A stretch of DNA of 64,000 nucleotides from Macrostomum lignano (Eukaryota): contig NIVC01000301.1 of assembly GCA_002269645.1 (NCBI GenBank), forward strand, positions 480,460 through 544,459, written 5' to 3'. Below the pieces are notes generated by a model. The model did not search any database and was not told where the DNA came from. It saw only the letters and a program-made list of their open reading frames with translations. This document shows positions 468 through 59,821 of this stretch, in pieces. The position numbers and the translations under genes are program-made. Every line of letters begins with the position of its first letter. Position 1 is the stretch's first letter.

Positions 468-3041
468 TTAGTACTCTCCTAGGCATTGCGTGTTCAGGTT
501 TGCAAATAAAAAAGAAAATGGCACCGCCATCATTGCGACTCCGAAGATGACGAACGCTTTAAAGAACACCCGATCAGCGGAAGATCCGACAGTCTTCCAT
601 TCGTTTTCGACAAAACTGGCGTTGGAAGTCTGTGATGCCGATACGTCGCCATCCGCATCGGCTGTGGTGCGTGTGACTGTCCGCTTAGAACTTTCTCCGA
701 CAACGAATCTGTTGAGGAAGAGTGCACGGACGACCCGGCTGCTGACGCTGCTCTCCTGTCTGAAGTGACAGCTGAGAACGAATGCGTTGCAGAGCACATT
801 CAGGATTGTCATGACCACGGCCAAGCTGAAGTACCAGGCTGGAATGTGAGGCAAGTGTCAAATTCAGATAGACTGCTCACGCAATGGAAGCAATCGAGAG
901 ACTCACTGATGAACGGCACGGACTCGCTCTGCGTAGGCGTGTAGTTGCCAACCAGCTGCAGGAACACGCACATGGACAGCACGATGGTGATGCTGAAGGA
1001 GACTCGCTCGCCACACTCTGGAGGCAGGCAAAAGGCGAGCGCGGAGACTCCAAGGAGAAGAATGCAGGGCAGCATCAGGTTTATCATGTAGAAAATCGGA
1101 AGTCGCTGCAATTACGAGCGTAGAATTCCTAATCTAGTATTTCATGTTTCTACGAGTAAAGCATGATTTCAAGAAATTGTACCAAGATCTGGACAACAAC
1201 TCACTTGAAATCCGACCCGGAGCTCGGCTGTGTCGTACAGGCCAAACGATCCGTTTTCTAGCCGGGCCCACAGAATGCAGAACTCGCTGCTCTTGATGAC
1301 GAGCACATCAGGCGCATCATTCTGGTACAGGGACTTGATGCGGACTCGAGTCGATCCCGTGACTTGCTGCAGACTCGAGAGCCTGACGAGACAGTTTTGC
1401 TCATCGAACGGAAACAGCTGCATTTGCATGCTGCACTTGGTGGACAGAATCATTCCTGTGCTCCACAGCACAATGCCTGAGGACATCACCGAAAGAATCG
1501 CGCGGCCCTCTGTAGCGTCCGAGATTTCCACCCTAGAGTGAATTGTTTAAATGAAGGCACTCATTGAGAGCAGTTTCAATTCGTCAGTCGTCAGAACGTC
1601 AGAACTTAATTTCTTCAGTAGTCTCTGCAGTGCATGCATCAAGCAGGATATCTTTTTTAGTTTGATTGAGTAGCTTTTTATTTAATCCATTTGCTTGTAG
1701 AGCGTATGTCCGAGACACAAAAATTTTGTTGCACTGGGATACCTGCAAAGGTTTTCCTAATTGGGTTATTTTATACCTAAGTTCGAAATTTTCCCTTTAT
1801 CAGTTTGCGTTGCCTTAAGAAGTCCAAGGTTATGGCCTCTTCTTTCAATGCGTCGATCCAACGCTGAGCGGAAGAATTAAAATTAAACAGAATTAAATGG
1901 CGCTGAATGGAGTTGCAACCGCGAGCACGACAACAGCTCGAGTTTAACATTGAGCTGCTCCTTTTTCAGTATTAGTATTAATCAGTATAATAATAATAAT
2001 AATGAATAAATTATTATACAGTATTAATATTGCTAATGCACTATGTTCGAACATATCGACTCCTATTTAATGAGAAGTTCTATTAAACTCTCAAAAAATA
2101 ACGTCGATGTCCCTAAGCTACTGAACTAAAAAGCTAAGCAACCCACGTCGGGTTTTTTCGCACAAGTGACGAAAAACAGCGGTCGCACTTCCGCAATCTA
2201 AAGTGGCCTATCTAGCGAATGTATCATCTATTGTGGTCTGTAGTGTTGAAAGCAACCGGCATGTTCTCGATATCTTTTTTAGGTCCAAGCACTGAACCAT
2301 ATTCACTAATTCTCTTTTGTTAAATTTCAAGTTCGAGCACGCGTAAAACAACTCACGCATCGTAAAAGGATGCGTCAGGTTGCCACAGGTACGAAGCCGG
2401 AAGGCTGATTGCGCTGATATTGTCCAGACTGGAGTTGAACTTTCCTTTCCAGGCCAGGCGACTGTCGGTCCAGTGCTGCAATTACAGCTCATTAAAAATT
2501 ATCTCTGCAAGGATTGAAAGGAATCTTTCTTGTATCAAAGGTATCTAAGACTTAAAGCTTACCACGTTAAGCCACACCATGAGCTTTATTTCCTGTTTTG
2601 TGGAGTCCTGAAAGAAGTGTCAGAAAGTGGGTCATCCATTTACGAAAAAAAAATCTGCGTATCAGAATTAATGAGTGATTCGAGTTCATTGAGCATCGAA
2701 ATACGATTAGTAAACCTACAAGCAAGCATACAAACCTTAGAGATTTAGTGTATTAGATTATGCTGAAGCAGGAAACGGAAGAAACTCGAAAAGGGATGCA
2801 CTAAAAAGCTTAGCATGACTCGTTTAACACAACTGCTCACCACTTTAACGATGGAGTTCAGGTAGATGAAGACGTTGAGGGTGTTGGCGAATCCGCTGTC
2901 AGGTGGCGGTCGGATTGCTTTGTTATACTCGGTGAAGAGCTTCAGCGCTGCCGCGACGGCATCGTCAGGTGAGGCGGGCGATGCGGCCGCTGACACAGCA
3001 GCACCGAGCAAGGCCAGGCAGATGAGGAGTCGCGCCGACAT
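468..3041 (-). CDS. Divergent Cys-loop ligand-gated ion channel subunit A (nAChR-like, cation-type), ~420 aa, 6 exons
   Basis: Exons 3041-2841, 2607-2563, 2475-2357, 1532-1205, 1105-907, 838-468; all GT-AG and in frame (1263 nt). Signal peptide MSARLLICLALLGAAVSA, WQPD loop A, Cys loop CSMQMQLFPFDEQNC, M2 GERVSFSITIVLSMCVFLQL, M4 preceded by EWKTVGSSADRVF. The 45-nt second exon is typical of nAChR genes. Confidence 0.93.
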
Positions 3042-5512
3042 ACCGGATGCTGCAAGAGTCTGTCAGTCACAGAACGCAAAATTTAGTTGCGAATCTGGCA
3101 AAATAGTCAAATCACGAATAAATTTGAGTCAAGACGGCTGGGCTTGTTCCGCTCTGATTTTTATTGGCAAAAATGTAAATCCTGCTTGAATATTCAAGTA
3201 CCGTCTGTTTGCTGAAGCTGATTGCGCATATAAAATCTTTGTTTAACACACTGCTCAGCTGAGTGTTATACACCGAGAATACTCAAATTATTTCTTGTAT
3301 CCTGGAGGAAACGCAAACAATTTCAGGCAGATAAATTTCTTTGAGTCTTTCTCTGAGACAAAAAATCAAGTTGCAAAGCTGACTAAATTTCTAGTTCATG
3401 AAAAAGCGAATTGTCATTGTCAGAAAACTTTTATCCCTTCGGTCAATTACTTATAGTCCCCTCTATCAGTTCCCTCGGACTATCAGGGTAGCATTTTATA
3501 TGTGCTTTGCATTAGAGGGGTTCGCTATGCAGTCATTCGTCCCGAGTTTGCTCTCCGTGTGGCATGGAAATTTCGGGAGAAATCCAATTCATTAGCGCCG
3601 CAGAAGTCAATTTAATCAGCAATTTTCGGCGTTGCAGAATCAGCCCACTTCTCCGTGCTGTCACGGCAAACTTTTCTGTGAATTTTTTACATTATCCAGC
3701 TATCCATCCAGCAATTTTCCAGCACTTGGATGTTGGAAATAATTAGAGGAAATGTAGTCTCATTTACAGCAAGATACATCAGTACTCAAAATTTTTGTCA
3801 GTGTTTTATTTTTTATACGAGGCGATCCTGTAGCAAGTTAATATGCTCTAGCATATTATCTTATAGGATCCTATAGGATTTGCATGTTCAGGTTCTAAGA
3901 ATCAGATTCTTAGAAAATGTCTCGCACAGGAATACGGCGTAGCTGGCCAGCCACCAACCACCCAACTTGAGGTAGGTTTGGATTGACTATATATGAAACT
4001 GTATTTTGGCAGTCAGATCTCTGCCTTCTTCTGGTCCACGCGCCGCATCTGTTTCTCCATCTGCCGCGCTTTGAGGCGCTTTGATTCTGCCTCGGTCCAT
4101 TCGTTGTTACCTTGCCCGACTGCAGTAGTCTTGCCGGCGTAACGTTCGCGGTGACCTCATCTGAGCATCGTTGCAGGTAAGCGCGTTCTAGATAGAAGCC
4201 CTCAGCTTTGACTTAGTACGCGATGCCGACCCTGAGGATCTCAGTTTTACACCGGAGGATCTGGTAGGTTTTGGCCAGAGCGTCGCTGAACTGCCAGACC
4301 GCGAGCGTCCTCTGTTGAGAGTAGGACCCCGAGATTAGGCCAGTATTGGGGAAACTTCTCCGTTAGTCGATCTGTTCATCCAATCTTTTAGCTCGTATCA
4401 CCTGCCGTGTCCGTCTCATTCACTGCTGAGATCTAATTGCCAAGTTCGCATTAAACTACCAAGCGTTAATTACAAAAGTTACGAGGAATGTCCCAAAAGT
4501 TCCCGGAATGTTTGCTCCAGCTCCTCAGCACCTTAACCAATTTTTATGCGTTACGTGTCAAACTAAAGACTATTTTTTAACAAAACATCTTTTCATTTGA
4601 ATTTCCTTTTTATCTGGTTTTAGTTAAGAGTTACACCAGTAAATGTGAAGCAAGTTCAGTACTAGTGTTACGCAACCTCAAATGTCTGTGGTGTCCTTGT
4701 TCCATCATCAATATTTTGCAAAAATTAACTTTGAATTTGTCAGAAAGATGTGGAAACATCTGTGGATGAAACTAGTAAAATTGCTGATCAGATCTAGTGG
4801 TGTCAGCGCTAGCTTACATGTATGTCATACTAAATGCTTGCCTTTGGCTAAAGATTTAAAGATGAGTTCCCTCCATAGCCTTGAGAGTCAGTGGGAGTCA
4901 ACTTTTCGCCCTGCGGGGGTGGCGAGAGCGTGACTGATGGTCATTCAAAGTGGATTAGCCATCCTTGAACCGTTGGTTGAGAAAAGATGATTAGCAATTT
5001 TGGCTCCACTCCATCCTGCAGACCACAGGGCGTAATTTATCTGAATCGTTGTGTAATTTATTGGATCAAGGTACACGAGTTAAAAATCGTTATCTGTGAG
5101 CAGTTATTATCAGGATCGAATCACAACTCGATCAAATTTTATCCGGAATTGTGTTATTCATTTTTTGGTACCGTACCACCTGCGGCTATTGGAAACATTT
5201 TCGTAGGACTCGCCGACCGGCGATGGGCAAATGGGAATTAATAGTTTTAACACCTCTAGTAGGTTGTATCTTTTATTGCTACGAGTATAAGCTAAATCCG
5301 CCTGCTATCGCAGGCTACGGCTGTGTCAAAAATATGCTGAAATAGTCTATGGCCTGCTCTGCAGGCCATTCCGCAAGCTACGCTGGTGAATAGAATCCCA
5401 ACCAGCAGTGTAGGGGTTAAGCAATGCAGTCCTCTCGGGAAAAAGTGGTTACAAAAATTGCGGTAACTGCCACAGCTAAAGCCGAAACTGTCATAAAGAA
5501 GGCAAAAAATAG

Positions 5513-7297
5513 TCAGTCAGCTGAGTCCACAACTTCAATCAAATCCTGACTACGCGAGCTGCTCGCACTACTGGCATCGGGAAGCTGCGACGAGTTCTCT
5601 GCAACTGTTGTTTCCGCCAAAGAATGCTTCGGCATCTTTCTGATGACTCGGTTGAGGAACAGCGTACGGATGAGCCGGCTGCTCACCGGAGCGCCGCTTT
5701 GCTGCTCGAAGTTGTTGTGTCGTGGCAAGGAGCCCTTAAAAGGGCCGTTTTACTAACTAATTAAAAGGGATATTTTTTCTAACTACTCTACTGTAAGTAG
5801 GCGTCACCGTAAATGTGATGCAAACAATTAATACCTTTTCTTGCTGCCAAATTTATCGATCGCCTATTAATTCATTATTGGATGTGAAATATTAGCGCGC
5901 GTTTAATAGTGTGTTGAAAACTAGCACAGAAAAGTACCAGGCTGCAAAGATAGGAAACTTGTAGAGTCGCGGTCGTTGCATTGAGACAGAATGCTAGCAG
6001 TTAATGGAAGCTTTGAATGACTCACTGATGAGCGGCACGGACTCGCTCTGCGTGGGCGTGTAGTTGCCGGCCAGCTGCAGGAACACGCACATGGACAGCA
6101 CGATGGTGATGCTGAAGGAGACTCGCTCACCGCACTCGGGCGGCAGGCGGAAGGCGATGGCGGAGATGGCGAGGAGGAGGACGCTGGGCAGCATCAGGTT
6201 CACAAGATAAGAAGGTTGGCCTTATCTGTTTTTTAAAACATCAAAATATCTCATGGATTTCTTTGATTGGTTGAAGTTTTACTCAAAACTTAATTCGAAT
6301 TATCATTTAATGCATTTTACCTGAAATTCTACTATAAGCGGCAGAATCGGATGCCCCGAGTCCTCATATTCAATGAGATGAACTTGCAAAAGGCTGAACT
6401 CGTTCGATCTGGCTAAAAATCGAGTAACGGAATCATTGGGTTCGATTGATGATTTTACAATATCAGCTCGTTCCTTCATCGAAGTGCGCGAGATGATCTT
6501 CAGGCTGCACCGTTGCACATCGACAGGAAAGCTGGCAAGATTCATTTCGCACTTGAATGTCGTGACCAGCTCGACGTTGGTCGCAGCGGTGCCGTCCATC
6601 ATCACCGCTATCGGTGCAGGTTCGAGGCTTGTAGACTTTTGATCCAGCCTGCGTGCAACGGGAACAGGCAATGATCACGGGTACTTGTGAAACAAAGCAA
6701 TGCACTCTGCTTTGCATTTACACTCCGTAGAGAGTTCGCTCCGGCTCCCAGACTTTGCCAGTTGGAACTGTTATTTCGGTAATGCTGTCGCGTGACTGCC
6801 ATTGAATTTGCCCTTTCACGAGAGTCGACTGTCTTTCCAGTACTGAAAAGCAAAGAAAAGAAACGGAGGGGACTCAACTCACTCTGTTAAGCCTTTTGCA
6901 ACCTCGAAGAAGCCAACAAATTTGCTGCCTCGTATTCAATAATTTTCGAAAAGATACGAAACGTCACCGAACGGCGCCTGTCAAACCTTTGTTAACCACA
7001 GTTGAAGTGTAACCTCTTGGGACGTTGAGTCCTGAAATTTCCAACATCCGCCATGTTAGCTTTTGTGCTCAATAAGCTGAGTAAAACAAAGAGAGCATGA
7101 AAACTGACGCACAACTTTTGCCAGGCTGCTCAAGTAGACGAAAGCGTAGAAGGCTCGGTCCGTCCAGTTGGCTGCCGGCGCTCAGAACGCGCTGTTGTAG
7201 GTGGATCGAACCGCAGGGCTGTCAGCACCGCCTCCTCCGGTGAAACCAGCTCTGCATCCGAAGCAGCCTCGATCATGACAGCATTGTACAGTGCCAT
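5513..7297 (-). pseudogene. Cys-loop channel subunit B pseudogene
   Basis: Same exon layout: 7297-7113, 7031-6987, 6842-6722, 6648-6321, 6225-6026, and a broken exon 6 from 5941 to ~5513. Nonsense TGA at 7182-7184 (conserved Arg of RPP) and at 6816-6818 (conserved Trp). Frameshifts in exon 1 (-1), exon 3 (121 vs 119 nt) and exon 5 (200 vs 199 nt). Exon 6 is interrupted by ~200 bp of AT-rich sequence. Confidence 0.9.
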
Positions 7298-7647
7298 GTT
7301 CAGTGCTGTTAAGAGAATAGCATTTTTATGGGAGCTGAGGAAGCCATGAGGTTCTGCAATATGCTCATTCCAGAAGGAGTCAGTGATGATGCACTGTCTT
7401 CAGTTTCTTGATCCGAAAAAATCCTATAGCAATAAAGCTACTGAGTACGAAGCGGATAGGCAGATGCTGTCAAATGGGTCGGCAATGGAGCCGTAACCGC
7501 TAAATAGTTTTTGAGGTGTTTGCCTTAGGTAGGCTAAACTAAATACAATAAAAGCCCCTATGTTGGCGTAGCGCGCGAATTTGTTTGATTAAGTCAGAAA
7601 AATCAGCACGGTTTAGAATAGTGATAGGCTAGATCATATCTGACATG

Positions 7648-7855
7648 CAGCAATCAATACTCAGTGCTAGATCATGTCTGCAATCAATACTCAGTGCTAG
7701 ATCATGTCTGCAATCAATACTCAGTGCTAGATCATGTCTGCAATCAATACTCAGTGCTAGATCATGTCTGCAATCAATACTCAGTGCTAGATCATGTCTG
7801 CAATCAATACTCAGTGCTAGATCATGTCTGCAATCAATACTCAGTGCTAGATCAT
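7648..7855. repeat. 30-bp minisatellite, ~7 near-perfect copies
   Basis: Unit CAATCAATACTCAGTGCTAGATCATGTCTG, head to tail, no spacers. Confidence 0.97.
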
Positions 7856-8509
7856 CACGCGGCCTGTAGCCGCCCACAAAGCACGCTTACCTTGAATTCC
7901 ATAGTGGGTAATGCCAATTTGAAGACTAAAGAATTTTCTAAGAGCGAAACTATGCTACCCTGGGAGCCCAACTGCTTTTTACTTATAAAGAATCCCGCAA
8001 ATCCCTCACTAACTTATTTCCAGACATTCCGCAATTTGAAACTACCGTCAGTAGTGTAAAAGCAAATTGTAAGTCTAAGAGCAGCTTCTTTATTGCTTGT
8101 ATCGCTGCTATGCGGGATTTTAGCTGTTTTAATCGATGATTCTCGTTTGACTTCATAGAAAATCTCAACTCCAGCTATCATCTGTCACCAGCAGCAACAG
8201 CAGATGCTGTCTGGCCGCCAGAATTTTCATTCAATGACCTTACTGAGAACCTTACAAGAAAACCCGTGAGAACACTATGAAAATCTAGAATCCAAATTTA
8301 AGAATTTTCGTGAGTTACTCGTGAAGGTTCGTGAGTTAAGGAGGATTTAGGGAAGAAAAAAACTTTTGCGTCGCCCAGCAGAAGCATGAATACGGGGAAA
8401 GTGGCTCAATTTATCTACGGAAATTCTGAAAAGAAGATGGGTTAACATTATTAGCTTGCTAACAGTATAGACAAAACATAATACACTGCAAGCCCCTTGA
8501 ATAAACCAA

Positions 8510-9030
8510 AGCACAGAGACAGGTGGGCCAGCACCTCCCGACTGCCGGCAATCGAGCGCGGCTGTCCCCGGTCCTTCCGTCGCCCTCCGCAGGTCTTTGC
8601 TTCGATTCAATCGCAGGGACATCATGTCGGTAACCATGGCTCTCTCAGGTAAAGGGTGCGTCCAAGAGAAAAATCTATAGCGAGGAAAGCCCATTCTGAA
8701 GTGTTGAGAATGCGGAGTACTTTATCTGTGAATGCCCCGCCTTTACTCAGGACAGGCTCACCCACCTCGGCCCAAATTCGGACCTTTTCGACGCTTTCAG
8801 GCCCGAGGATTTCTGCCAGCTCGTCCGCTACCAAAAGGCTACCGGGCGAGAGACCATTTACCTCCTGGACTCTCTGGAGGGGAGCCGCAATACGGATACC
8901 AATACCGCCGGATCGACCCGCGTGACAACGCAACACCAGCTGCCCGTAGTTTCCAAAGGTCAGCGGAATGGGCGCCGACACCTCCCCGCTGCATCCGGAT
9001 GCTCAGAACCCCTGCAGTTAGGTCAAGTCA
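8510..9030 (+). mobile_element. Degraded 3' end of a non-LTR retrotransposon ORF2 (CCHC zinc-knuckle region)
   Basis: Translates with stops and shifts to [18 protein letters not shown]...ENAEYFICECPAFTQDRLTHLG, matching the LINE C-terminal GH...CxxC...EHxxCxCP...R...LG pattern. A second copy lies at ~29985-30380. Confidence 0.7.
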
Positions 9031-9604
9031 AGTAAGTAAATGATACACTGCAAGTTTACGGGAGACAGGGAGGCCGTACTCAACATCCCCGGCACTCAGA
9101 AACCCCAGTTTGAGTGTAGGGGAGCTACCCTTAGCCTGATTGAACCAGTCTCAAGTCCAGGCAGTGTTTGCATAAATGAGGAAGGCATTGAAAGAAGCTT
9201 TTGCTTGCATTTCGATTTTCAGAGACTGATTTTCTATACATTTCTAGTTGATTCTATGCTTATCAAGAATTTGTCTGTTTGTCTCGAATTGCTTGCGTTT
9301 CCTCTAGGATATATTGACTTACATTGAAGCCAAATTGTGTAAATTTGTACAAGAAATAATTTGAGTATTCTCAGTGTATAACAGGCAGCTGAGCAGTGTG
9401 TTGAACAAAGATTTTAAATGCGCAATCAGCTTCAGCAAACAGACGGTACTTGAATATTCAAGCAGGATTTACATTTTGCCAATAAAAATCAGAGCGGAAA
9501 AAGCCCAGCCTTCTTGACTCAAATTTGTTCGTGATTTAACTATTTTGCCAGATTTGCAACTAAATTTTGCGTTCTGTGACTGACAGACTCTTGCAGCATC
9601 CGGT

Positions 9605-11422
9605 ATGTCAGTGCGACTCCTCATCTGCCTGGCCTTGTTCGGCGCCGCCGTGTCAGCAGCCGCATCGTCCGCCTCACCTGACGATGCCGTCGCGGCAGCT
9701 CTGAAGCTCTTCACCGAGTATAACAAAGCGATCCGACCGCCACCTGACAGCGGATTCGCCAACACCCTCAATGTCTTCATCTACCTGAACTCCATCGTTA
9801 AAGTGGTGAGCAGTTGGGTTAAAGGAGTCATGCTAAGCTTCAATGTATTGCCCATGATTACTCATAAGAGCTTCAATTCAATCGTTGAGTTTCAATAACT
9901 ATCAGCCAGTGGTGTTGGTGACCATATAAACGTTCATGTCATGATTTAGCAGAAGAGAGGGTACTAATTTTGTAATAGATTCTGCCAATTCAGAATGTTT
10001 CCCACTATTCTTCAGGATTCCGCAAACCAGGAGATCAAGCTCAAGGTGTGGCTGCATGTGGTAAGCATATGATGGCTTGTTTTGAGTAATGTCCGAATAG
10101 TTCCTGTTGATTATACTAACGTAAACAATTAAATTTTAGCACTGGACCGATAGCCGCTTGGCCTGGAAAGGAAAGTTCAACTCCAGTCTGGACAACATCA
10201 GTGCAATCAGCCTTCCGGCTTCGTACCTGTGGCAACCGGACGCATCTTTTTACGATGTGTGAGCCGCATTCCGAAAAAGGATTTGGGGAAAATAAACAGT
10301 TATGAGGAATGAACTTAGGTAGCTATTGACAACATGACTGACAATTTAACAGCATTTAGTTTCATGCCTCACTCTAGGGTGGAGCTCTCGGACGCTACAG
10401 AAGGCCGCGCGATTCTTTCGGTGATGTCCTCAGGCATTGTGCTGCGGAGCACAGGAATGATTCTGTCCACCAAGTGCAGCATGCAAATGCAGCTGTTTCC
10501 GTTCGATGAGCAAAACTGTATCGTCAGGCTCTCGAGTCTGCAGCAAGTCACGGGATCGACTCGAGTCCGCATCAAGTCCCTGTTCCAGAATGATGCGCCT
10601 GATGTGTACGTCATCAAGAGCAGCGAGTTCTGCATTCTGTGGGTCCGGCTGGAAAACGGATCGTTTGGAATTTACGACACAGCTGTGCTGCGCGTCCAAT
10701 TCAAGGTGAAACTTATACAAATCAGTAAAATACATTTAAAGCCTCGTGTTTATCGCCGACAAGCTTCTAAATCAAGTATTGCCATTTTAGCGACTTCCGA
10801 CTTTCTACATTATCAACTTGATGCTTCCGAGCATACTGCTACTTGGCATTTCTACGCTCGCCTTTTGCCTGCCTCCCGAGTGTGGCGAGCGAGTCTCCTT
10901 CAGCATCACCATCGTGCTGTCCATGTGCGTGTTCCTGCAGCTGGTTGGCAACTACACGCCTACGCAGAGCGAGTCCGTGCCGCTCATCAGTGAGTCTCTC
11001 GATTGCTTCCATTGCGTGAGCAGTCAATCTGAATTTAACACTTGCCTCACATTCCAGCCTGGTACTTCAGCTTGGCCGTGGTCATGACAATTATGAATGT
11101 GCTCTGCAACGCGTTCGTTCTCAGCTGTCACTTCAGGCAGGAGAGCAGCGTCAGCAGCCGGGTCATCCGTGCACTCTTCCTCAACAGATTTGCTCTCAGA
11201 CGAAGCTGTCCGCGGAAGGTGGCAAGTGCTGCAACCGATGCAGACAGCACGCAATCGGATGTCCCTAGCGATGTCCCTAGCGAAAACGAATGGAAGACTG
11301 TCGGATCATCCGCTGATCGAGTTTTCTTCAAAGCGTTCGCCACTGTTGTAGCCGTAATACTTATTGTGCCGTTCGCTATTTCCTTTGCGTCCTGGAATAT
11401 GAGCTGCCTTGGAGTGTACTGA
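9605..11422 (+). CDS. Divergent Cys-loop channel subunit C (inverted close paralog of A), ~418 aa
   Basis: Exons 9605-9805, 10016-10060, 10140-10258, 10378-10705, 10791-10989, 11058-11422; in frame (1257 nt). Same motifs as A. Confidence 0.94.
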
Positions 11423-12266
11423 GGCTCAACGAAGAATTTAAAAAAATGTTTTGTATGAAATGCCCTACTGAGCCGAACTAAGGAAGGATCTTTGCAAAAG
11501 AACTATAATTCTGCCATCAATACTATGGATTTTAGGGTTTTTTGAACTCTTTAAAGAAGAAATTTAAATAAACAATGAAAATTTGACCGAAACAACGCAC
11601 TGAAAAGAAAGAGTGATTTTGTATTTGTGATTTGTGTTTTTAGCAACAGTTTTATGTAGGGCCTGTGTTAGCCAGTGACTGCAGGGGTCTGGCTGTGGCG
11701 GAGAAACAATACACTACTGAAATATGAGAAAATTGAGCTTGAAACATTTTTAGACAATCTTTCAAACACCTCGTAGGTACACGCCTTCTGCATTTTAATT
11801 AATTTTCTTAGCTGAAAGTTTAGGACAAAAGTGACTAAAGTTGATGGTTAAATGATCAATCCCTAGAAATCACCAGGCCCTTCCATATGGCGACTGGACA
11901 AACACGTTAATTACTATTTTTCATTTACCAATGAAAGTGTCTCTGTGACTTCTATGTTTTGCATTCTGCATTTTTTGAATTTTCGGTATTTACCGAGGTT
12001 CAGTGATGAGTAATCTTGCCAGAATGCATTACAGGAACATAAAAGTTGTGAGATATTTTATACTCAGCCTCATTTTCGCTCAGTCTACTTAACTCGTAGT
12101 TAAACAAAGGCTAATTTGCCTCTAATAGCAAGTGTAGATCAAATTTGCTGCTGGCTCCAGGCAAACAGCGGTCTCTTCTGTAAACACGGAACCATGATAT
12201 GTAAGCACTCTTCCATTGGCTACTAACCTAGCCAGCTGTCAGTCAGAACTCCAGCCAGATCCCAAG

Positions 12267-14788
12267 ATGTCGGATCTTTTGTACTGCATGGCGTTTGTCT
12301 TCGCATTCGGAGCCGCCCGCGCTGATGCAGCTGTCGCCTCGCCAGACGCGGCGTTGGTGGTCGCGCTGAAGCTCGCCACCGAGTACAACAGCTGGGTCCG
12401 GCCGCCCCCTGACGCCGGCAACGCCAACACAGTCAACGTGTATCCATTCTTGAACAGCTTAGTCAATTTGGTGAGCTGGCAGTACCTTCTAACAACTTGA
12501 TGCTGATGCCCTCTAAAGTTCTTTGCATTCATCCGTTATTGTTACAGAACTCGGCATCTCAGGAGCTGACTCTGCAGTTTTGGTTGCAGAAGGTTTGTTT
12601 CATATTTATTTCACCTTAAAAGTATCGAAGCATTATTTTCAATGCTGCTGTCACTATGATGAAAATTGCAGCACTGGCTTGACTCCCGACTGTCCTGGCT
12701 GGGCAAATTCAACTCCAGTTATGACAACATCAGCTTTATATTTCTGCCCTCAAGTAAGGTTTGGCAGCCAGATATTAGCGTGAACAATGTGTAAGTCTCG
12801 TTTCTATTGTTTCCAAAGGGACTTCTGATTTAAAAATTCAACCCCCCAGCCCTGTTGCACAATTATTTAGGATCGAGCTAAAAGACCTATCGCTGAATGA
12901 GGCTCCCGTTGAGGTCATAAGTAACGGCATTGTCCACCAAGGACTGGAGCTGCTTGTCACCTTTAAATGCAAAATGCAGATGTATCTGTTTCCATTTGAC
13001 AAGCAGAAATGCCGATTGAGAATCTACTCACGACTGCAGACTAAAGAAACAATGACATTGAATACGAGCCGATTGTTTCCTAACATTTCCATGGAAACCT
13101 ACTTGATGAAAAACAACGAATTCTGCATCACAAATTTGCAGCTGGAACAAGAGGAAGCATTCGGCCAGAATGCAATATTATTCACCATTTCGTTCCAGGT
13201 AAACTCAGTGCCAACTTCTTGAATTTGAGCGTTTCACTATTCAACGGCATATTCTAAGATAATGAGAGCGAACTCAATTTCAGAGAGGGTCGGCATTCTA
13301 CTTCACCACCCTGATTTTGCCCAGCGTCCTCCTCCTCGGCATTTCGACTCTCGCTTTTTGTCTGCCGCCCGAGTGCGGCGAGCGAGTCTCCTTCAGCATC
13401 ACCATCGTGCTGTCCATGTGCGTGTTCCTGCAGCTGGCTGGCAACTACATGCCCACACAGAGCGAGTCCGTGCCGCTCATGAGTGAGTTTTAGTGCCCCA
13501 AAGCAAAACACGAATACGCGATGTTGGCGAAAGCGAAAGCAGTAACGAGAGCCTCCATGCAGCTTAGACTGTCGGGAAGGCAGGCCACGTGGTGAGCAAT
13601 GGACTGCTCCAACTGGTTGACGCTGACGGTATGGTTGGTGTCGAGCTGCCGGCAGAGCTCGAGGAGGCTGTCCAAGTCCTTGGCAGCGAGTGCTGCAGCT
13701 ACCAATGCGCGCATTGAGGCTTTCGGCTCCATGTGAGACAGGGCTGGGTGAGTCAGTGGCGAAGGAGAGAGTGGGTGAGTCCACAATTAACGTGTTGGCA
13801 TTTAATACTTTAGTGCCCCAAAGCAAAACACGAGTACGCGATGTATTATAGGATAAAAGAAGAAAGAAAGAACTGCGCGAAAACACTGCCAACTCAGCAG
13901 CGCGGCTGGAGTAAAATACCCCCCCCCCTCGCCGGCGGAGGGGTGGGCGCCCACCTAAACAACACAGAACGTACACACGCGGCGGGGGGGGCGCACCACA
14001 GACGCAGCGCGCTTGGGCACTAAAGCCGGTTTGCTCAAGGCAAGCCTAGCGCAAACCGCAGCCTTTGCACTCAGGGTAGAATTTCATATATTTTAGGGAT
14101 TTTAGCGACTGGTAAAGACGCTTGCTGAGATGAAGTGGGGCTGGTTGCGATTCAAAGGGCTTCATTGCACGTGCTATAAGAAATTGTCGTGCGTACATTT
14201 CGACAGGACAGGCTGCTTTTAGCAAGACGACGAATAGACATTAATGGTTCTTTTAGTTGTTTAGGTTTTCTTACAATCGAGTTTAAAACTTCTAGTCGAT
14301 TTGCAAAGTATTTTGGCTCATAGTCCTACATAGTCTTCATGAAGGGAGCGCACGCTGACTTGTCGAAAAATCTTTTTCAAACTAGTTTCCTTTTTGCAGC
14401 CTGGTACTTCAGTTCGACCGTACTTCTGACGATGGTTAACGTGCTGTGCAACGCATTCGTGCTCAGCTGCCACTTCGAGCAGCAGAGCAGGTCTCGCGTG
14501 AGCAACCGGCTGATCCGAGCGCTCTTCCTCAACCGTTTTGCCGTCTGGATCAGCTCGAGCCGGAAGAGGGCTGTGGCCAATGTGCAGAGCTCACAAGCTG
14601 GAGATTGCAGTTCAGCCGGCAAGCAGGGCGACGAGTGGGCAGCAGTTGTCCGATTTGCCGACGCCTTTTTCTTTATGCTTTTCCTTCTGGCTACCCTGGC
14701 AAGCATATTTCCTATGGCAGTTCTGATGGCAGTCTCTTCGCAAACAGAATGTCTGCAAGGAGCCGAGGAGAATGACATCACTGCCTGA
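12267..14788 (+). CDS. Divergent Cys-loop channel subunit D, ~427 aa
   Basis: Exons 12267-12470, 12548-12592, 12672-12790, 12871-13198, 13284-13482, 14400-14788; in frame (1284 nt). Cys loop CKMQMYLFPFDKQKC, M2 GERVSF. Confidence 0.92.
13488..14024. mobile_element. Insertion in intron 5 of subunit D, with duplicated left end and short inverted right end
   Basis: TTTAGTGCCCCAAAGCAAAACACGARTACGCGATGT at ~13488 and ~13809; inverted TTGGGCACTAAA at ~14013-14024. Confidence 0.5.
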
Positions 14789-14899: not shown

Positions 14900-15690
14900 A
14901 TAAGCAAATCTTGTTAAGCTTCTGTTGTTTACCTGATGTAAGTTTTGCACCATACAAGGTCTGTAGTGCACTGTTGTGTCTGGTCTTCCCTTTGCTCTCG
15001 CTTTAGCCTTCCTCCACGTGCCTCGGTGAGGATGTTACAGTCGGCTCCGCTGTCCACCAGCGCCTGCACTGGAGTCGCTTCTACCAGCACGGTGGCAAGA
15101 GCCGCTGCCGCGTTCGTGTCGGAGGCCATCACGGTCAGGCAGAAGACTTCGTCCTCTGCGCCTGAACTGTCGCTGCCGACCCGCAGAGCTCGCATGTCAT
15201 CCGGCCAGGACAGGCAGGCCTTGGCGAGGTGATTTGGCTTGCCGCATCGGTTGCAGGTCTTGCCTACCGCTGCGCTGCAGCTGCAGTGGCCGAAGTTGCC
15301 GCAGCGGGATGCACTTTGGCTGCGTGCGATCGGCTGTCCGCGCGGCTGATCTCTGCGGCTGCTCTGGCGGGCTGCACGGTCGCTGCGCTGGTCTTCATGA
15401 GGCTGGCCTGTGACTCCGCTGCCTCCATGGCCCTGGCCACCCGGACCGCCTGGCCCAGGTCCACGTTGTCCATGGCAATCAGTTGGTCGCGGATCAGCGA
15501 ATCCCGGAGGCCTTCGAATTTGCAGCAGTCTGTGGTATCGTTGAGCCGCCGTAGCCAGTCGTCCAGGGACTCTCCGGTCTGCTGGATGCACAAACGGATT
15601 TGTTTGCAGGTGAAGGGCAAGTTGAGCTGGCTGGTGAAGTGCTCATTGAGAGCACACATGCGATGCCGAGGCACGTGGGGGAAGGCTAAA
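14900..15690 (-). mobile_element. Degraded Ty3/gypsy LTR-retrotransposon gag-protease fragment
   Basis: QQTGESLDDWLRRLNDTTDCCKFEGLRDSLIRDQLI (gag), CNRCGKPNHLAKAC (CCHC knuckle), ALVDSGADCNIL (aspartic protease D-S-G), split over two frames. Confidence 0.85.
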
Positions 15691-15969
15691 GCGAGAGCAA
15701 AGGAGAGACCAGACATAACAGTGCACTACAAAGGTCCATCTGCAGTTCATAAAAATTGGCGTTTCAAATTTTAATTAGAAATAACCCGAAATATAGAACT
15801 CGAAATAACGAAATATTTTTTGATAGTATGAACTACTAAAACGAAAAATTATTCGATGAAATCCAAATTTAAAGAATTTACTTCAAAGTCTTGTGAGTTA
15901 ATTCATTTAGAAATATACGACTCAGCTAACTCAAACTCAGGGCAGAGCGTAAAAATCTCTCGCAATACC

Positions 15970-17279: not shown

Positions 17280-17643
17280 ATAACTTTATGTTACTACTTT
17301 TAGTAGGCTACTGTGTTTGAAGATCTCTACACCGCTGCACGCTGTGCCGCACTGCGACTCTGGCGCGGATCCCTGGGAGCCATAGGAGAATCCGCAGTAG
17401 CAACCGACTCCAGCCTGCAGACCCAGTGGAGCAGCCAGCCGTGCACAGCTGCAATGTCAAACTGCTAGACTCATAGTTCGGATAATTTCCGTCCTTTTTG
17501 TAGACGCCGAGTGTCGTACTCTTCTCAAGGCCATTAAGGTCTCGTGTGGCATTCACATAGTCCGTGTAGCAGCCCAGGTACTTCACGCTGGTGACTTGCC
17601 GCCCGACGCAAATTTCAAAGGAATGGAGCAGGAGCAAAAGCAT
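17280..17643 (-). pseudogene. Secreted WSC-domain protein, frameshifted/truncated
   Basis: Hydrophobic N-terminus, then YLGCYTD...RDL...SLTLQLCTAGCST. After a frameshift it continues GLQAGVGCYCGFSYGSQGSAPESQCGTACSG, matching the WSC cysteine pattern. The usual Y/F-x-Y-A segment and the final CGG motif are missing. Confidence 0.7.
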
Positions 17644-18399
17644 GCCAGCACAGCCTGATTTGTAAATAGATGGCTACGCGGCATGGTGATGCTCAGAAGG
17701 TTTTAAAATGAATGACACAAAAAGGTACCGTAGAGATGCAGATTGAAGCATCGTTTAGTCTGCTTTATATATGCTTTTTAGTGGAATGCTGCAATCGGCT
17801 CAGCTACACAATAGCTGATGCTGAAGTATTGTGCGTGATTTGCTTTGCTCAATTTAGCGAGTCCAGATTCAATGATAAAAAAGAACAAAAAATTGCTCTT
17901 TCTTGTCTGATGTCGAAGTTGATCAAAGCTGGGATATACAGAAAGTCTACTTTTAAGTTGTATTTGACAATCGAGAAGGCATTCATCTCTGGGATTTGAG
18001 CAAATACAAAAAACAGCTGCTCAGACTGCCGTGAGATTTTCAGAAATTTTCTATTTAACAATACGCGGGCCGCATTTCCGCATCAGATTTTGACAATATT
18101 CTGTCTTTTCGATGCGCGCGATAGCTATATCGAATGCGAAAAATGTCTGCAGGACTCTGGAGAGGAGAGGCTGACTCCCTGTGGATGAGGAGAGCGAATT
18201 GTCGGAAGCTTTTTGTTTTTTTTCTTACCGATTGAAATACGAGAGTAATTTAATGTTCGAAGCTCTAATCCATACAGAGGCAGGTGAATCTCTTTTGATA
18301 CAAGACTCGAACACCCAGCCTGACGCGAATGAATCGCTGGAGTGCAGGGGACTCAACTGCAGCATCTCGTATAGAAGCATTTTTTTATAAATTTGTACC

Positions 18400-18690
18400 T
18401 GAGAGAAAGGTATTTATTGGATCGCATTAGCTTCTGAAGAACAACGTCGATACATGGTCCCGGACGTTGAAGACGTGTATAACCACCAGACCGGTTATCA
18501 TGCTTGCAGAAAGTGCAAAATGAGAACCAAAAACAGATTGCCGAGGCCGACACAACTGTCGCCCATTCAGTGTTTGAAGTTTGTGCATTGCCAGCATCAA
18601 ATGACGGCACATGAAATGATGAAGCCCAGAGTCAGCATTGAAGCTGGTAATGTCAGAAAAATGGATGAGGTGAAGTACTAGATGCAATTA
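18400..18690 (-). pseudogene. Orphan relic of a Cys-loop channel last exon (M3-M4)
   Basis: *YFTSSIFLTL (vs WYFSLAVVMTI) and NTEWATVVSASAICFWFSFCTF (vs NEWKTVGSSADRVFFKAF), with stops and shifts; no upstream exons found. Confidence 0.5.
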
Positions 18691-19482
18691 TAAACTAAAG
18701 CATATTGCTGTCGATCTGCATCTAGCGATCAAATATTTGTGGTGTACTCAATATTGAGTCGAGTGTGCTTACCCGCATGGCAAAATGGCACGCATGATTA
18801 ATTGCACTTCTATTGTTTACCTGTCAATCAGGCAAATTATTCGCTGGTCGCATTGACCATTGCAGATGTAGAGGCCAGGGGTAAAAGCTCGTTATCCATA
18901 AATTAAGAACGTATGAAAGTAAGAACCAGGCTTTAAAAAATTCCGGTTCGCTTCCAAACTAACCTTAAAAACTGGTTGAACAAGAGACTGACTGCCCAAG
19001 CTGCTCGCCTGGCAGTGATGTGTCAATGAGATTATGTGCCAACTTGCCTTTTTTGCCTAGCTCGTAGTACGACGTAAGATGGTGTTTATGGATGACGCAG
19101 CAGGGCAGTCGACTGAAGCGCGTCTCTGAGCCAAGGCTGCAGTGCAGTACACTGGTAGGAACATGAAACTGAAAAAATCACTGCAGCAGCCACTTTGCGA
19201 TTCTCCACTCATCTCAACAGAATGCTCCCCAAAGAGGAACTCAAGGTTGACTGAAGGCAAACACGACAGAACAAATAATTCTCTATTTGCTCTCTTGAAA
19301 CGAGTTTAAAGAGAATGCACCGCTGAGCCAACAGCTCGATACAATAGCTGGAGGCAGGGCTCCGGATGCATCCTCCTGAATATTTAATTGGTGGAAAGAG
19401 TGGTCTCTGGACAAACACGGGCAAAGATGCATAAAACTCCGACTGACTGGTTTTCTCAGAGCTACGCTCGTACTTCGCCTTC

Positions 19483-21196
19483 ATGTCTCTGCAGTGGCTC
19501 GTGCTCGCGGCCGCTTCAGCGGCTACTGTTGCCGCCGGAGCAGCAGCCATCGCCAACGTTTCACCTGACGAGTCGGTGATGGCTGCATTGAAATTCCCCA
19601 CCGAATATAACAGAGCTGCCCGACCTCCACCCGACAATGGCAATGCAAACACGGTCAACGTTTTTGTCTTTTTTAACGGCATTACAAGATTGGTGCGATA
19701 ATGTTCTTTGTTCAGTATCGATGGCTGGATTTCTGGGGCACAGCTTCAGTTTTGCAACTTATTCTCGTTTAATGACGGTCACAATAGAAAACTTACCCAA
19801 CTGACACAGGATCCCAACATCAATTTCAGGATTCTGCAGTGCAGGAAGTTACTCTGAGGATTTGGCTAATGACTGTTAGTGCCGATGTATTTCCATATGA
19901 ATTATGAAAATAAATGCAACACGTTTTCATGCAGGTTGATAACTCATCAAAATTTTAGCACTGGACTGACACTCGTTTATCCTGGTACAACAAGTTCAAT
20001 GCAACTCTGGATAGCATCGACTTCATCATTGTCCCCGCCAGCCTATTGTGGCAACCTGATGTCTCCTTCCTGGAAGCGTAAGACCAACACTAACAGACAA
20101 CGTCCATGGCCATTTCGATCTCTGAGCTACGTGACTCCTACTTAATCTATATTGATTTTAGCATCGAACTAAAGGATGTGGGAAACAGCCGAGACTTTGT
20201 GATGCTACACAACGATGGGACACTGCTCAGGAGCGGCGGCATGGTTCTCACCAGCAAGTGCAAGATGGAGATGTACCGATTTCCGTTTGACCTGCAGACT
20301 TGCGCACTTCGCATAGCGACCATTTTCGATACCACTGGCAGCACGTCTCTAGGGATTCTGCCACTTAATATTTCCCATGAACTGTATCTGAACAAAAGCA
20401 ACGAGTTCTGCATTCTGGGCCTTGATTATGAAATAAGTAAGCTGGTAGAGAAAAATGTACCCGAATTTCGGATTACTTTTCAGGTAAGACGGCCTCAAAA
20501 ATAATATCGCAATCGCATAACCCGCAAAGTGCAAAAGCTTTTCATTGCAGCGAATGTCAACATTCTACGTGGTGAACCTGATGCTGCCCAGCATCCTCCT
20601 CCTCGCCATCTCCGCGCTCGCCTTCCGCATGCCGCCCGAGTGCGGCGAGCGAGTCTCCTTCAGCATCACCATCGTGCTGTCCATGTGCGTGTTCCTGCAG
20701 CTGGCTGGCAACTACACGCCCACGCAGAGCGAGTCCATTCCGCTCATTAGTGAGTTTCTTTATGCGTTTTAAATTTATTACTGGCTCAGAAACTTTTACG
20801 TGATTTTTTCCTGGTACCTCAGCCTGGTACTTCAGCGTAACGTTGCTCATGACTATACTCAACGTTCTCTGCAATGCTTTTGTGCTCAGCTGTCATTTCA
20901 AGAAGCAATGCAGTTTGAAAGTCAGCAATCGTTTTATCCGCGTACTTTTCTTCAACCGTATCATGATGAAGAGCACTGCGGGGGCAAAGATTTCTCCCTC
21001 GGACTCGGTGGGCCCGCAGCCACAGCAGAATCAAGAGGACACGACTGTGAAGTTCGAAAACGACTGGGCTGATGTAGGAGCGCTGGCTGACAAAACATTT
21101 TTTGCTGTGTTCCTAGTCGCTACCGCAGTTCTCACCTTGAGTCTAGTCATATTTCAGCTCTCTGTGTACCGCACAGACTGTTTGGGACTGCTTTGA
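19483..21196 (+). CDS. Divergent Cys-loop channel subunit E, ~422 aa
   Basis: Exons 19483-19692, 19830-19874, 19959-20077, 20162-20483, 20551-20749, 20823-21196; in frame (1269 nt). Cys loop CKMEMYRFPFDLQTC. Confidence 0.93.
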
Positions 21197-21883
21197 CGAT
21201 ACTGAAATAAGTAAATGAATGTCACGGAATTCAAACAGCGATTGTACTAGATATTCCTCCGGAACGATATTTCATTTATCTTCTTTCCTTCTGTTAGTTT
21301 TTTAGTCAGAATCTCGAGTGCAAGTTCTCTAAGTCGCGAGATTTCAAATACTTTGATTAGTTCGACGCGAATCTGCTGTGTAATGATATCTGTGACATTT
21401 AGTTACTAAACTCGCCATTTTGGGGCCCCAATAAGAAATGAAAAATGTCCTAACTCGTATACCACTCTACTACAAGTAGACGTCTAAATAACTTTAAATA
21501 AATCGTTGTTATGTAGTTTCGAATTATCGATCATGTAGTTTTTTGTTCCGTCTTTTTGGGTTTCCCTTGTTAGCTATCAGTACATGCAAGTCAGAGACAA
21601 CATCATCAAAGCAAATGTCACTCGTGAATTGAATTGAAAGCTTCCTGCAAGGTGAATTTTCCAGCGCGCACTCTGGGCTTTGCTGTGGTTAATATTTATT
21701 GAAACGACCTTCCACCGAACCGACTTGGTCTCCAAATTGTAGCTGGCCTCGTTAATTCTACTAGTTTATTGTAGATTGAGACTCGTCTAAAATTAACTAG
21801 TCAAAGTTTTGTAACTTAATAAATCGATGATTTGAAGCATCTGTTTCAGCACATTAAGCTTGCCAATTGAGAGTTTCAACTCG

Positions 21884-24407
<2,524 letters not shown>

Positions 24408-26216
24408 GTGACCCCCGCTCCGGGAGACTGGCTTCCTGGTTGCTTTCTGGCCAGCATTGGTGGCGGTTCGCGCAAGTCTTTCCTCTGCTAATGAAAATAC
24501 AATTGCTTGCTGGGCAGCCCGTTTCCACCCAGGTTGCCACTGTATTTAGTCAATTTTTTGCGATAGATCCATCTATCGTGTCAATAATTAAGGCTAGTTG
24601 TGTCAGCTTAAATGAATTCATTTTCAGTGCGTACGAGTATCTTCTTGCACACCAATGTGTTTACCGAAGTATGCGGTCCGTGAAATTTGTGTGTACGCTC
24701 GTATCAGGTGATAATTCAATTTTTCCCAGCTTTGCAAATATTTGCGCTACAAATGGAATCTACCCAGATTAATATATAAAATTTTATTGACTATCTAGAC
24801 TATATGATTTGATAGGCTATCACACCAGACTACGGGCTTATAAAACACAGGTAGGCTACTGACACCGGTCGCATCCCGTGATTTTGCAGTCAAAAGTTCT
24901 TTCTAATATTTCATTTATGGTTGATATTGATAAATTAATATTCATTCACTTTAATTTATGCTGATTATGTGTTAAAAGGTTGAATCAAAGTCAATCGCAT
25001 TGTTTATCATCAGCTCAAATATGCGTTGACTGCCTCTCGAGTGCGCATCTCGAATGATTGCTTCTTTTGACGAGACTGGCTGGGCACTCACTAGTTTAGC
25101 GGATAAGCAGCCTACTGCTAAAATCCCTAAATTGAAATTCTGAAACATTTAAGTCTATGGAATCATAGAGACCATAACTGACAACTCATGCAGTTCGAGA
25201 CTGCAACAGGAGCTCAATACTATCCGTGGCGAATCTAGACGAGAGACTAGAGACTGAACATGCGCTTTGTGCCACGGATGACCTAAGCAGGCATGGTAAC
25301 GAAAGCAGGTGTCAATGACTACGGCTTCGGAGGTAATGACCTTGTGGGAGTCAATTAATTGAACGCGACTTTGGATTCGGGTGGGTAGAATTCAGATATA
25401 AGTTTTCAACTATTTTAGCCGATGGCTAGCAGCCGAGTTCCATCAACGCCCTCCCCGAAGCCACACAATTCAACAATTTACAGTAGATGTAAAAAACTTT
25501 CGACGGCTTTAATATAGGAAAACAAAGACAATCGAAAATAACATACAAACAATTAATATTGCTTGGATACACAGAAACGATTTTTAATGAATAGTACATG
25601 TAAATGAAGGATAGGGGAATTAAAATACTAGTATAACGTCAACGTCGCATAGGGACTCGAAGCAGGCACATTCTTATGTCACCGGGTTTGCTACAAAAAT
25701 AGGACTGGCAGATAATTAACGCAATTACAATTAGGACAGGCAACTGTCATTCTTGAGTAAATAGGAAATTTCTAATCTGAAAGTGATCGAGAATTTTTTC
25801 ATAAGATCATATCAACACCTAGACAAAACAACCATAAAAATTGAAGCAAATTTATCTACAATAAGCTTTTCGCTGGACTAAAAAGAAAGCGACGCGTCAA
25901 AGGAAGGCAAACCCAGGCGAGAAAAAAGGGCTCAGTCTGATGCATATCTTCTTCATTTGGTTAATTATGGGTGAATACAAAAAGTTAAAATGGTCCCTTA
26001 ACTCTGCTGAAGAGGCCAGAACTACTGTAAATTAAAATTATCCAACTTAACAAATTCTTTTTCCTTGAGCAGTGGAGTAATATAGGTACAGTTTCTATAT
26101 TTCTTGGATCAATATAGTACCGCAGCGTCAGAAAAATCCGGCTTAAAAAGCCTACAGTCAAACTTACAAGCAGTTGTTCTGTTACGCCATCAAGTCTGTT
26201 TGTTACGCATGAAAGT

Positions 26217-59771: not shown

Positions 59772-59821
<50 letters not shown>

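Follow-up and report, generated by a model that had tools for sequence, protein, structure and literature searches.

We analysed a 64,000-nt stretch of the genome of the free-living marine flatworm Macrostomum lignano (here termed the window; assembly GCA_002269645.1, contig NIVC01000301.1, positions 480,460 to 544,459 of the forward strand; coordinates below are those of the window), in which Cys-loop receptor genes of mixed orientation occupy positions 468-24457. They comprise six loci of one family, termed G1 to G6. Loci were counted by tblastn with family peptides and by a hidden Markov model (HMM) of the family compared to every six-frame segment of at least 15 amino acids (aa). These searches found neither a seventh copy nor a separate relic fragment in the window, and by the same two methods the remaining 40 kb is without family loci. 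A first-pass annotation of this DNA had described six genes of the same architecture plus a relic, in mixed orientation within 24 kb. The architecture and mixed orientation were borne out, since all loci follow a single six-exon plan, but the count requires amendment: there are six loci in all and the relic, G2, is one of them, leaving five genes (one doubtful) and one relic. The loci are as follows.

468-3041 (-): G1, intact, 420 aa; exons 3041-2841, 2607-2563, 2475-2357, 1532-1205, 1105-907 and 838-468 (stop included); the family HMM matches every exon
5423-7277 (-): G2, pseudogene; exon remnants at about 7277-7111, 7031-6987, 6842-6722, 6648-6321, 6225-6026 and 5941-5423
9605-11422 (+): G3, intact, 418 aa; exons 9605-9805, 10016-10060, 10140-10258, 10378-10705, 10791-10989 and 11058-11422
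12267-14788 (+): G4, intact, 427 aa; exons 12267-12470, 12548-12592, 12672-12790, 12871-13198, 13284-13482 and 14400-14788; intron 5 is 917 nt long
19483-21196 (+): G5, intact, 422 aa; exons 19483-19692, 19830-19874, 19959-20077, 20162-20483, 20551-20749 and 20823-21196
21884-24457 (-): G6, nearly intact, at least 417 aa; exons at about 24395-24219, 24129-24085, 23899-23781, 23706-23382, 23306-23108 and 22272-21884

Gene models were constructed by reading each exon junction in three frames and then assembling the spliced sequence. The exon lengths common to all copies are 201-210, 45, 119, 322-328, 199 and 365-389 nt, separated by GT-AG introns that are mostly 67-233 nt long, with three of 824-917 nt. 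The 45-nt exon, which encodes beta2, presumably matches a 45-nt exon conserved in vertebrate nicotinic acetylcholine receptor (nAChR) genes, as deep homology with the nAChR/5-HT3 branch would lead one to expect. The array contains four clean copies, one nearly intact copy (G6) and one dead copy (G2). G1, G3, G4 and G5 each have an ATG, a signal peptide, GT-AG introns and a stop codon, and encode products of 418-427 aa. G6 lacks an ATG in frame; the sole candidate close by (24455-24457) is off by one base across a run of five G (24411-24415). From the signal peptide onward G6 is complete, with a GC donor in intron 4. Either a true frameshift or a mistake in the assembly would account for the start defect. 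A third possibility for the start of G6 would be trans-splicing, by which many M. lignano mRNAs receive a leader ending in ATG. Pseudogene G2 carries at least six disabling lesions in total. Stop codons interrupt it near 7183, 6817, 6223 and 5514, its exons 1 and 3 are frameshifted (the latter at 6784-6806), and a foreign segment of about 190 nt (5888 to 5719) takes the place of part of membrane helix M3; exon 4 and the part encoding M2 are still open. Two tandem repeats lie within or near these two loci: an (AGAT)107 microsatellite at 22482-22910 takes up much of G6 intron 5 and reads as a long YLSI open frame, and a perfect minisatellite of seven 30-nt units lies at 7650-7855, upstream of G2.

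G1 and G3 form a recent inverted duplicate pair, with 84% aa identity and inverted arms (I1-I3, I12 and I13) that are 90-95% identical; all other pairs are 48-52% identical. Together with pseudogene G2, this pair supports the birth and death of genes proposed at first pass.

The public models for this locus are wrong, and the corrected models given here are directly usable. Model P0002 (UniRef A0A1I8JJA8) matches the exons of G5 at 100% where they overlap, which identifies the DNA as that of M. lignano; however, it skips the 45-nt exon 2, and its C-terminus is the antisense strand of G6 exons 6 and 5. Model P0020 (A0A1I8JJA1) fuses G3, G4 and G5 as a single protein of 1056 aa. A single residue in G4 sets it apart from the window (AFVVSCHF versus AFVLSCHF), which indicates another haplotype or assembly. 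Antisense open reading frames (ORFs) over exon 5, such as 20557-20874 and 13254-13976, account for the false C-terminus of P0002. We treat them as by-products of a conserved tract that is rich in G+C at third codon positions (GC3), described below.

The family matches the Pfam domains Neur_chan_LBD (PF02931, E = 1.4e-19) and Neur_chan_memb (PF02932, E = 6.9e-21), both above gathering scores. Each live gene product comprises a signal peptide, an extracellular beta-sandwich, the pre-M1 Arg and four membrane helices, M1 to M4. The Cys-loop is intact (C-x13-C with FPFD, e.g. CSMQMQLFPFDEQNC and CKMEMYRFPFDLQTC), and both Cys residues and FP.D are invariant in the family alignment. An AlphaFold2 model of family member P0003 contains the expected strands and helices M1-M4, with a predicted local distance difference test score of 66 overall and 75-92 across most of the membrane domain. 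With this model Foldseek gave a probability of 1.00 to both nAChR and serotonin (5-HT) receptor 5-HT3A chains, which were equally good matches (target-normalised TM-scores of 0.70-0.76 over the two groups). M2 begins with CGERVSF (PPECGERVSF) in 6/6 copies, with Glu at -1' and no extra Pro at -2', and is similar to that of 5-HT3A in having E at -1', S at 2', T at 6', L at 9' and V at 13'; position 16' is Gln. The GER at -2' to 0' in all copies, which agrees with the GE(R/K) marker reported at first pass, predicts that the channels would be cation-selective. The M3-M4 loop, previously put at about 60 aa, measures 59-64 aa and contains MX- and MA-like helices.

Several further Cys residues are invariant: after beta9 (NEFC), just after M4 (xCLG/xCLQ), at M2 -3' (PPEC), at M2 12' (SMC) and in M3 (SCH). 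In G3 the beta9 and post-M4 residues are C207 (exon 4) and C414 (exon 6); in G1 and G3-G6 the latter lies 4-8 residues past M4. These two Cys could form a disulfide linking the C-terminus to the ectodomain.

The residues that bind transmitter in classical receptors are mostly absent. Loops B and C were located by HMMER alignment to mouse 5-HT3A and by alignment to nAChR-like proteins. At loop B the sequences are RLSSLQ in G1 and G3, RIYSRL in G4, RIATIF in G5, PLLPQL in G6 and KIISRT in G2; the Trp position is thus occupied by L (G1, G3), R (G4, G2), I (G5) or Q (G6), while nearly all non-family relatives in an alignment of about 170 nAChR-like representatives have GSW there. The loop C stretches (ENGSFGLYD, EQEEAFGQN, EISKLVEKN, VSGEPTGLD and EYEDSGHPI) have no Cys-Cys and no conserved aromatic (Tyr) pair, and differ in every copy. 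All five strings quoted at first pass for each loop were found; those for loop B align at that loop, without the Trp, and those for loop C lack the vicinal Cys and vary as described. All copies retain the loop D Trp (as VWL, FWL or IWL). At loop A, Tyr is present in G1, G3 and G6 (SFYD), but absent in G4 (SVNN) and G5 (SFLE). Against mouse 5-HT3A, the HMMER alignment shows Ile for the loop B Trp and substitutions at the loop C Phe/Tyr, the loop E Tyr residues and the loop D Arg; of the serotonin-site residues just two are retained, the Trp of loop D and the Glu of loop A. In the usual 5-HT3A numbering, the loop B residue is W183 (here L, R, I or Q), and the other changed residues are F226 and Y234 (loop C), Y141, Y143 and Y153 (loop E) and R92 (loop D). 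The predicted orthosteric site is eroded, with most of the classical aromatic box gone.

Conservation among 11 non-redundant family members is distributed unevenly along the protein. Loops B, C, E and F are only 15-26% identical, compared to 54-62% for the Cys-loop, beta2-beta3 turn and beta1 (58-62% for the first two), 66% for M1, 84% for M2 and 57% for M3. The contrast between one pore and variable binding loops drawn at first pass therefore holds. Elements involved in gating are conserved, namely the Cys-loop FPFD, the beta2-beta3 turn, the pre-M1 Arg and the M2-M3 region.

The uniformity of the pore, a point that the first pass missed, extends to the nucleotide level. It is located in exon 5, which encodes M1-M2 and is represented at each locus as follows.

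907-1105 (-): exon 5 of G1; its 3' two-thirds are the homogenised tract; 58-mer at 952-1009
6026-6225 (-): exon 5 of pseudogene G2; 58-mer at 6071-6128
10791-10989 (+): exon 5 of G3; 58-mer at 10887-10944
13284-13482 (+): exon 5 of G4; 58-mer at 13380-13437
20551-20749 (+): exon 5 of G5; 58-mer at 20647-20704
23108-23306 (-): exon 5 of G6; 58-mer at 23153-23210

The 58-nt block shows zero differences across 6/6 copies, pseudogene G2 included. Across the same six copies the M2-coding part of exon 5 has 90-98% nucleotide identity, and that of G2 is 92-98% identical to the live copies. Exon 5 was the only repeat family or arm set that linked all six loci in repeat detection (80-95% identity). The proportion of synonymous differences (pS) is 0.03-0.19 in the M2 part versus 0.5-0.9 elsewhere, where it is saturated in all non-sister copies, and third-codon-position identity is 1.00 in the core of the tract versus about 0.25-0.5 elsewhere. 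The M3 peptide NVLCNAFVLSCHF is equally conserved as protein, yet its third-position identity is only 0.37-0.70; selection at the protein level alone does not, therefore, yield the pattern seen in M2. Among codons that specify the same amino acid in non-sister pairs, 29-36 of 34-37 are identical in M2 versus about 45% in the rest of the gene. In Fisher tests p ranged from 1e-5 to 1e-10 among the nine non-sister pairs and was 0.0085 for G1/G3, and run-length permutation gave 0 or 1 of 5000. GC3 is 0.85-0.95 in the tract versus 0.5-0.7 in most other segments.

Sharing of variants outside M2 also appears to be mosaic. Informative sites supporting G1=G3, G1=G6 and G3=G6 number 39-45, 0-5 and 0-4, respectively, per 30-codon block in the ligand-binding domain (LBD), as compared to 10, 9 and 4 in M1 and 30, 16 and 6 in M4; in the latter two regions G1 sides with G6. 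A paralogue on contig NIVC01003108.1, which serves as a partial stand-in for a between-species comparison, is 80-82% identical in the tract, with many synonymous differences, and in other arrays the M2 peptides differ. RNA structure offers no explanation for the tract, the fold energy being ordinary (z = -0.34), and Rfam produced no match in the window.

Repeated gene conversion inside the array, possibly GC-biased, is the best explanation for the homogenisation of M2. The closest analogue that we found is TLR1/TLR6, in which conversion likewise homogenises one part of neighbouring receptor paralogues while the rest is divergent (PMC2077338). The flatworm tract differs in spanning about 130-200 nt of one exon, in involving six copies including a pseudogene, and in belonging to an ion-channel family. 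A full-text literature search on mosaic conversion returned no example from a ligand-gated ion channel family.

Relatives of the family were sought by word-indexed searches and by an exhaustive HMMER scan in which family member P0003 was queried against 1.84 billion representative proteins. Strong matches were confined to M. lignano. Scores drop from above 260 bits in M. lignano to about 220 bits and below elsewhere, where the matches near 220 bits are a mixture that includes a clam "alpha-7", "5-HT3A-like" proteins of fish and frogs, and a protein from a hemichordate. The best non-family representatives named were all from other animals (14/14), and 0/14 was a cephalopod chemotactile receptor (CR). 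In a neighbour-joining tree of 190 receptor units and 322 columns, built without an anion-channel outgroup, the core family clade received 88% bootstrap support, or 89% once the two remoter branches from this species (P0024/P0167 and P0039) were included; all nodes deeper than the M. lignano clade received 0-12%. The family is an M. lignano-specific clade of predicted receptors, numbering at least 14 and distributed over several tandem arrays. The lineage-specific clade proposed at first pass is accordingly present in the tree, and the one-to-one orthology to conserved subunits that would have spoken for a different history was not seen, the exhaustive scan detecting no orthologue outside M. 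lignano.

At least nine more distinct members occur elsewhere in the M. lignano proteome, and several of these are fused in public models as a result of their tandem position. At the locus fetched for P0170, that gene adjoins the start of a second family member; the remainder of P0003 was not found in locus L001. On contig NIVC01000984.1 of the same assembly (locus coordinates 3067-13916) a remoter M. lignano subfamily (P0167-like, M2 PADSGDRLALNVAILLSMSVFLQ) is present as three copies in tandem, with 98-99% identity among their exon 5 sequences. Tandem arrays are thus the rule for the wider clade. Since P0039 still has GSW at loop B, the loss of the loop B Trp is suggested to have occurred within the M. 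lignano lineage.

The description of the genes as nAChR-derived could not be upheld. In PDB sequence searches 5-HT3A scored as high as or higher than nAChR subunits, both with a single member (144 bits, versus 119 for nAChR beta2 and 117 for alpha7) and with the family profile (198 versus 190-191 bits), and the deep nodes of the tree carry the 0-12% bootstrap values given above. Conversely, the mean distance to the fish and frog "5-HT3A-like" proteins (2.34) is greater than that to other relatives (2.08). It is safe to state that the predicted proteins belong to the cation-selective nAChR/5-HT3 branch. 5-HT3A of mouse and human (e.g. PDB 4PIR, 6NP0, 8BL8) is the best-scoring solved relative, with a TM-score of 0.73-0.76 (target length). 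Its M2 is identical to that of the flatworm family at -2' to 3' (GERVSF), 5', 6', 9' and 13'-15', and its MX-like helix and MA-like helix, with the DW..VG..DK.FF pattern, are similar. Overall identity is, however, only about 22-24%, the flatworm intracellular loop is much shorter, and the tree gives no support for grouping the two. Alpo4 of the annelid Alvinella pompejana (PDB 8BYI) is likewise a lophotrochozoan orphan that falls between nAChR and 5-HT3, lacks the loop C Cys-Cys and has a pore of the cation type with the -1' Glu (PMC10338036). It does not respond to acetylcholine (ACh) or 5-HT (PMC10338036). In contrast to the flatworm family, Alpo4 retains the aromatic cage including the loop B Trp, is encoded by an isolated gene, and has a Met constriction at 16' where the flatworm proteins have Gln.

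We found no description of the family in the literature, and public databases hold only unnamed, partly mis-modelled predictions. A flatworm survey grouped all cationic subunits as "nAChR-like" (PMC6881066), and a BLAST-based survey of 5-HT3 receptors does not mention Macrostomum (PMC9977066).

Taken together, these observations are best accounted for, with a probability that we put at roughly 0.6, by a tandem array of Macrostomum-specific Cys-loop subunits with non-classical agonists and a pore exon that has most likely been subject to conversion. The subunits would assemble as cation channels that are opened by ligands at the subunit interfaces. Because the aromatic box is mostly lost and loops B, C, E and F differ in each paralogue, the agonists are probably neither acetylcholine nor serotonin, and they would probably differ among paralogues or among subunit combinations. 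The array would evolve through duplication, as in the inverted pair G1/G3, and through loss, as in pseudogene G2, while the M1-M2 exon would be repeatedly overwritten between neighbours by interlocus gene conversion, possibly GC-biased. Such conversion would leave the same pore-coding DNA in all copies, including the dead one, and may be limited to the sole segment still similar enough for pairing. A uniform pore and helix-packing surface would, in turn, preserve the ability of the paralogues to co-assemble.

The pattern of substitution indicates that G1 and G3-G5 (G6 being doubtful) are working genes, whose products most likely form ligand-opened cation channels. The proportion of nonsynonymous differences (pN) is well under pS in all structured segments from exon 1 to M4, with the intracellular loop alone near parity. 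In the LBD pN is 0.4-0.5, below pS, and four or five frames of about 420 codons are open despite saturated synonymous sites. Calculation of dN/dS for each domain, recommended at first pass, proved feasible in part only. Between the old paralogues saturation makes dN/dS in the binding loops inestimable; G1/G3 is the only usable pair, with pN/pS of about 0.4 in the LBD (exon 4). This ratio reflects relaxed purifying selection and not evident positive selection.

Several points weigh against this interpretation. Channel activity, ion selectivity, ligand gating and co-assembly are all deduced from sequence. Loops C and F evolve rapidly in many pentameric receptors, so that their variability alone is no proof of different ligands. 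G6 may be a second pseudogene. With respect to conversion, the tract ends about 5-10 nt from the exon borders, as selection on the mature RNA would also produce, a 29-nt core of the tract is identical in the paralogue on another contig, and 17 nt are common to the distant subfamily. The sharing of these 29 and 17 nt outside the array implies that codon preference or some other direct constraint contributes.

With regard to function, a possibility that we consider the strongest of the alternatives, if well short of an even chance, is that the genes encode internal receptors, synaptic or neuromuscular, whose endogenous ligand is neither ACh nor 5-HT (candidates being an amine, choline, betaine, a peptide, protons and zinc), or non-binding structural subunits that co-assemble with canonical nAChR-like ones. 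Conservation of the gating machinery and cation pore is consistent with such a role, as are the existence of canonical nAChR-like partners in M. lignano (P0005 and P0012), the retention of loop B GSW in the sister branch P0039, and the textbook observation that the loop C Cys-Cys is absent from many non-alpha nAChR subunits too. For internal receptors one would, however, expect the binding loops to be conserved and other flatworms to have orthologues, whereas the loops of the paralogues are 15-26% identical and no orthologue was found outside M. lignano.

Somewhat less probable, and tentative at best, is the suggestion that the products are peripheral chemosensory receptors, which would be expressed in sensory cells of the epidermal or ciliated kind and respond to cues from the environment, food or mates. 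A lineage-specific clade in tandem arrays with a pseudogene is a pattern typical of chemoreceptors, the binding loops vary on a fixed scaffold while transmitter-binding residues have been lost, and the cephalopod receptors show that a route from transmitter receptor to chemoreceptor exists (PMC11526382). The cephalopod CRs (octopus CRT1, squid CRB1) are similar to the family of G1-G6 in being a lineage-specific tandem expansion of cation-selective Cys-loop subunits (PMC11526382, PMC10338036) in which the ACh-binding signature was lost and the pocket diversified while a conventional pore was kept. For CRs, both expression in the sensory cells of suckers and opening by hydrophobic ligands have been demonstrated, whereas the flatworm family is known here from its sequences only. 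CRs are also placed within the nAChRs, while the flatworm family scores alike against nAChR and 5-HT3, and the 60 top PDB sequence matches and 50 top fold matches listed include no CR structure. The two groups appear to be of independent origin, the resemblance being one of mode of evolution only. Moreover, immune and reproductive gene families show a like pattern, as do orphan receptors such as Alpo4 (PMC10338036), and the G1/G3 ratio in the LBD points to relaxed purifying and not to evident positive selection. The nAChR-like expansions of molluscs and other lophotrochozoans are likewise large, lineage-specific, tandem and diverse sets of cationic Cys-loop receptors (Jiao et al. 2019, PMC6896357), yet the mollusc nAChR expansions have been tied to development, immunity and stress, and not to chemosensation (PMC6896357). 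Most of the mollusc copies are retrocopies without introns, which were later duplicated in tandem (PMC6896357); the flatworm genes, in contrast, keep six exons. A text search of that paper found no mention of flatworms or of gene conversion.

A more elaborate proposal, which we regard as unlikely, is that the array encodes a modular family of chemoreceptors for environmental or social cues, in which variable ligand-binding exons are combined with a common pore exon that conversion keeps uniform, such that any mix of paralogues would be functional. If true, this would represent a second, independent path of the cephalopod type from transmitter receptor to chemoreceptor, with a new mechanism for maintaining a shared signalling module.

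It is improbable, although suggested by the position of the tract ends and by the 29-nt and 17-nt segments shared outside the array, that the identical M2 DNA is held by selection at the nucleotide level, for example as a small-RNA target, a splicing enhancer, or an element that co-regulates or chooses family members. G2, with at least six lesions in other parts of the gene, retains the tract, paralogues outside the array have many synonymous differences in the tract and carry other M2 peptides, and the mosaic sharing of variants by G1 and G6 reaches into M1 and M4. There is, in addition, no stable RNA structure, and GC3 is raised as biased conversion predicts.

Finally, the idea that the array is decaying junk, in which recent duplicates drift to pseudogenes and the loops vary from lost constraint, draws on the one dead copy, the one doubtful start and the poor (fused or truncated) public gene models, but is very improbable given that the paralogues are old (synonymous saturation) and four nevertheless have complete frames, canonical splice sites and signal peptides, that pN is below pS in every structured segment, and that residues for fold and gating do not vary among at least 11 members.

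If the channels work, the flatworm family would join the octopus chemotactile receptors, Alpo4 and the mollusc expansions as lineage-specific Cys-loop receptors outside classical transmitter signalling. Lineage-specific orphan expansions of cationic Cys-loop receptors are already known as a type; the probable exon-restricted concerted evolution of the pore, which reaches a pseudogene, might be the part that specialists could find unexpected. Under the favoured interpretation the array is a compact natural case of mosaic ion-channel evolution, in which binding loops diverge while one pore exon is copied between neighbours, and it bears on how receptor families acquire new specificities yet keep assembly and conduction. 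M. lignano is transgenic and tractable by RNA interference, so that ligands and expressing cells should be findable. A sensory role, if shown by expression or ligands, would raise the interest of the array considerably.

A number of other features were identified in the window. Between G4 and G5, an ORF at 14929-15774 encodes a gag-like CCHC zinc knuckle CNRCGKPNHLAKAC and is flanked by a 65-nt inverted repeat (14962-15026 and 15666-15730). This ORF has no Pfam match at E <= 0.001 and is probably a retroelement remnant. On the minus strand at 26217-33774 are two tandem units, each consisting of two ankyrin-repeat ORFs followed by a caspase-domain frame. The caspase frames match Peptidase_C14 (E about 1e-26) and contain the active-site motif QACR; each unit looks like an ankyrin-caspase gene that has been tandemly duplicated. 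A fragment of a mariner/Tc1-type transposase is present at 43750-44232 (-) (Pfam Transposase_1, E = 7e-5, just under the curated cut-off). Exons of a RhoGEF-type gene, with a DH-like sequence in one frame and an SOS1/NGEF-like PH domain (Pfam E = 1.5e-11) in another, are located at 59143-63500 (+) and are interrupted by GC-rich satellites. Minisatellites occur at 40899-42710, 48237-48910, 52160-54636, 55144-55566, 57393-57989, 59734-62403 and 63473-63998. They form a dense series of mutually unrelated repeats, with units of 4-141 nt in up to about 120 copies, and account for the extreme GC content and strand skews of the last 16 kb of the window.

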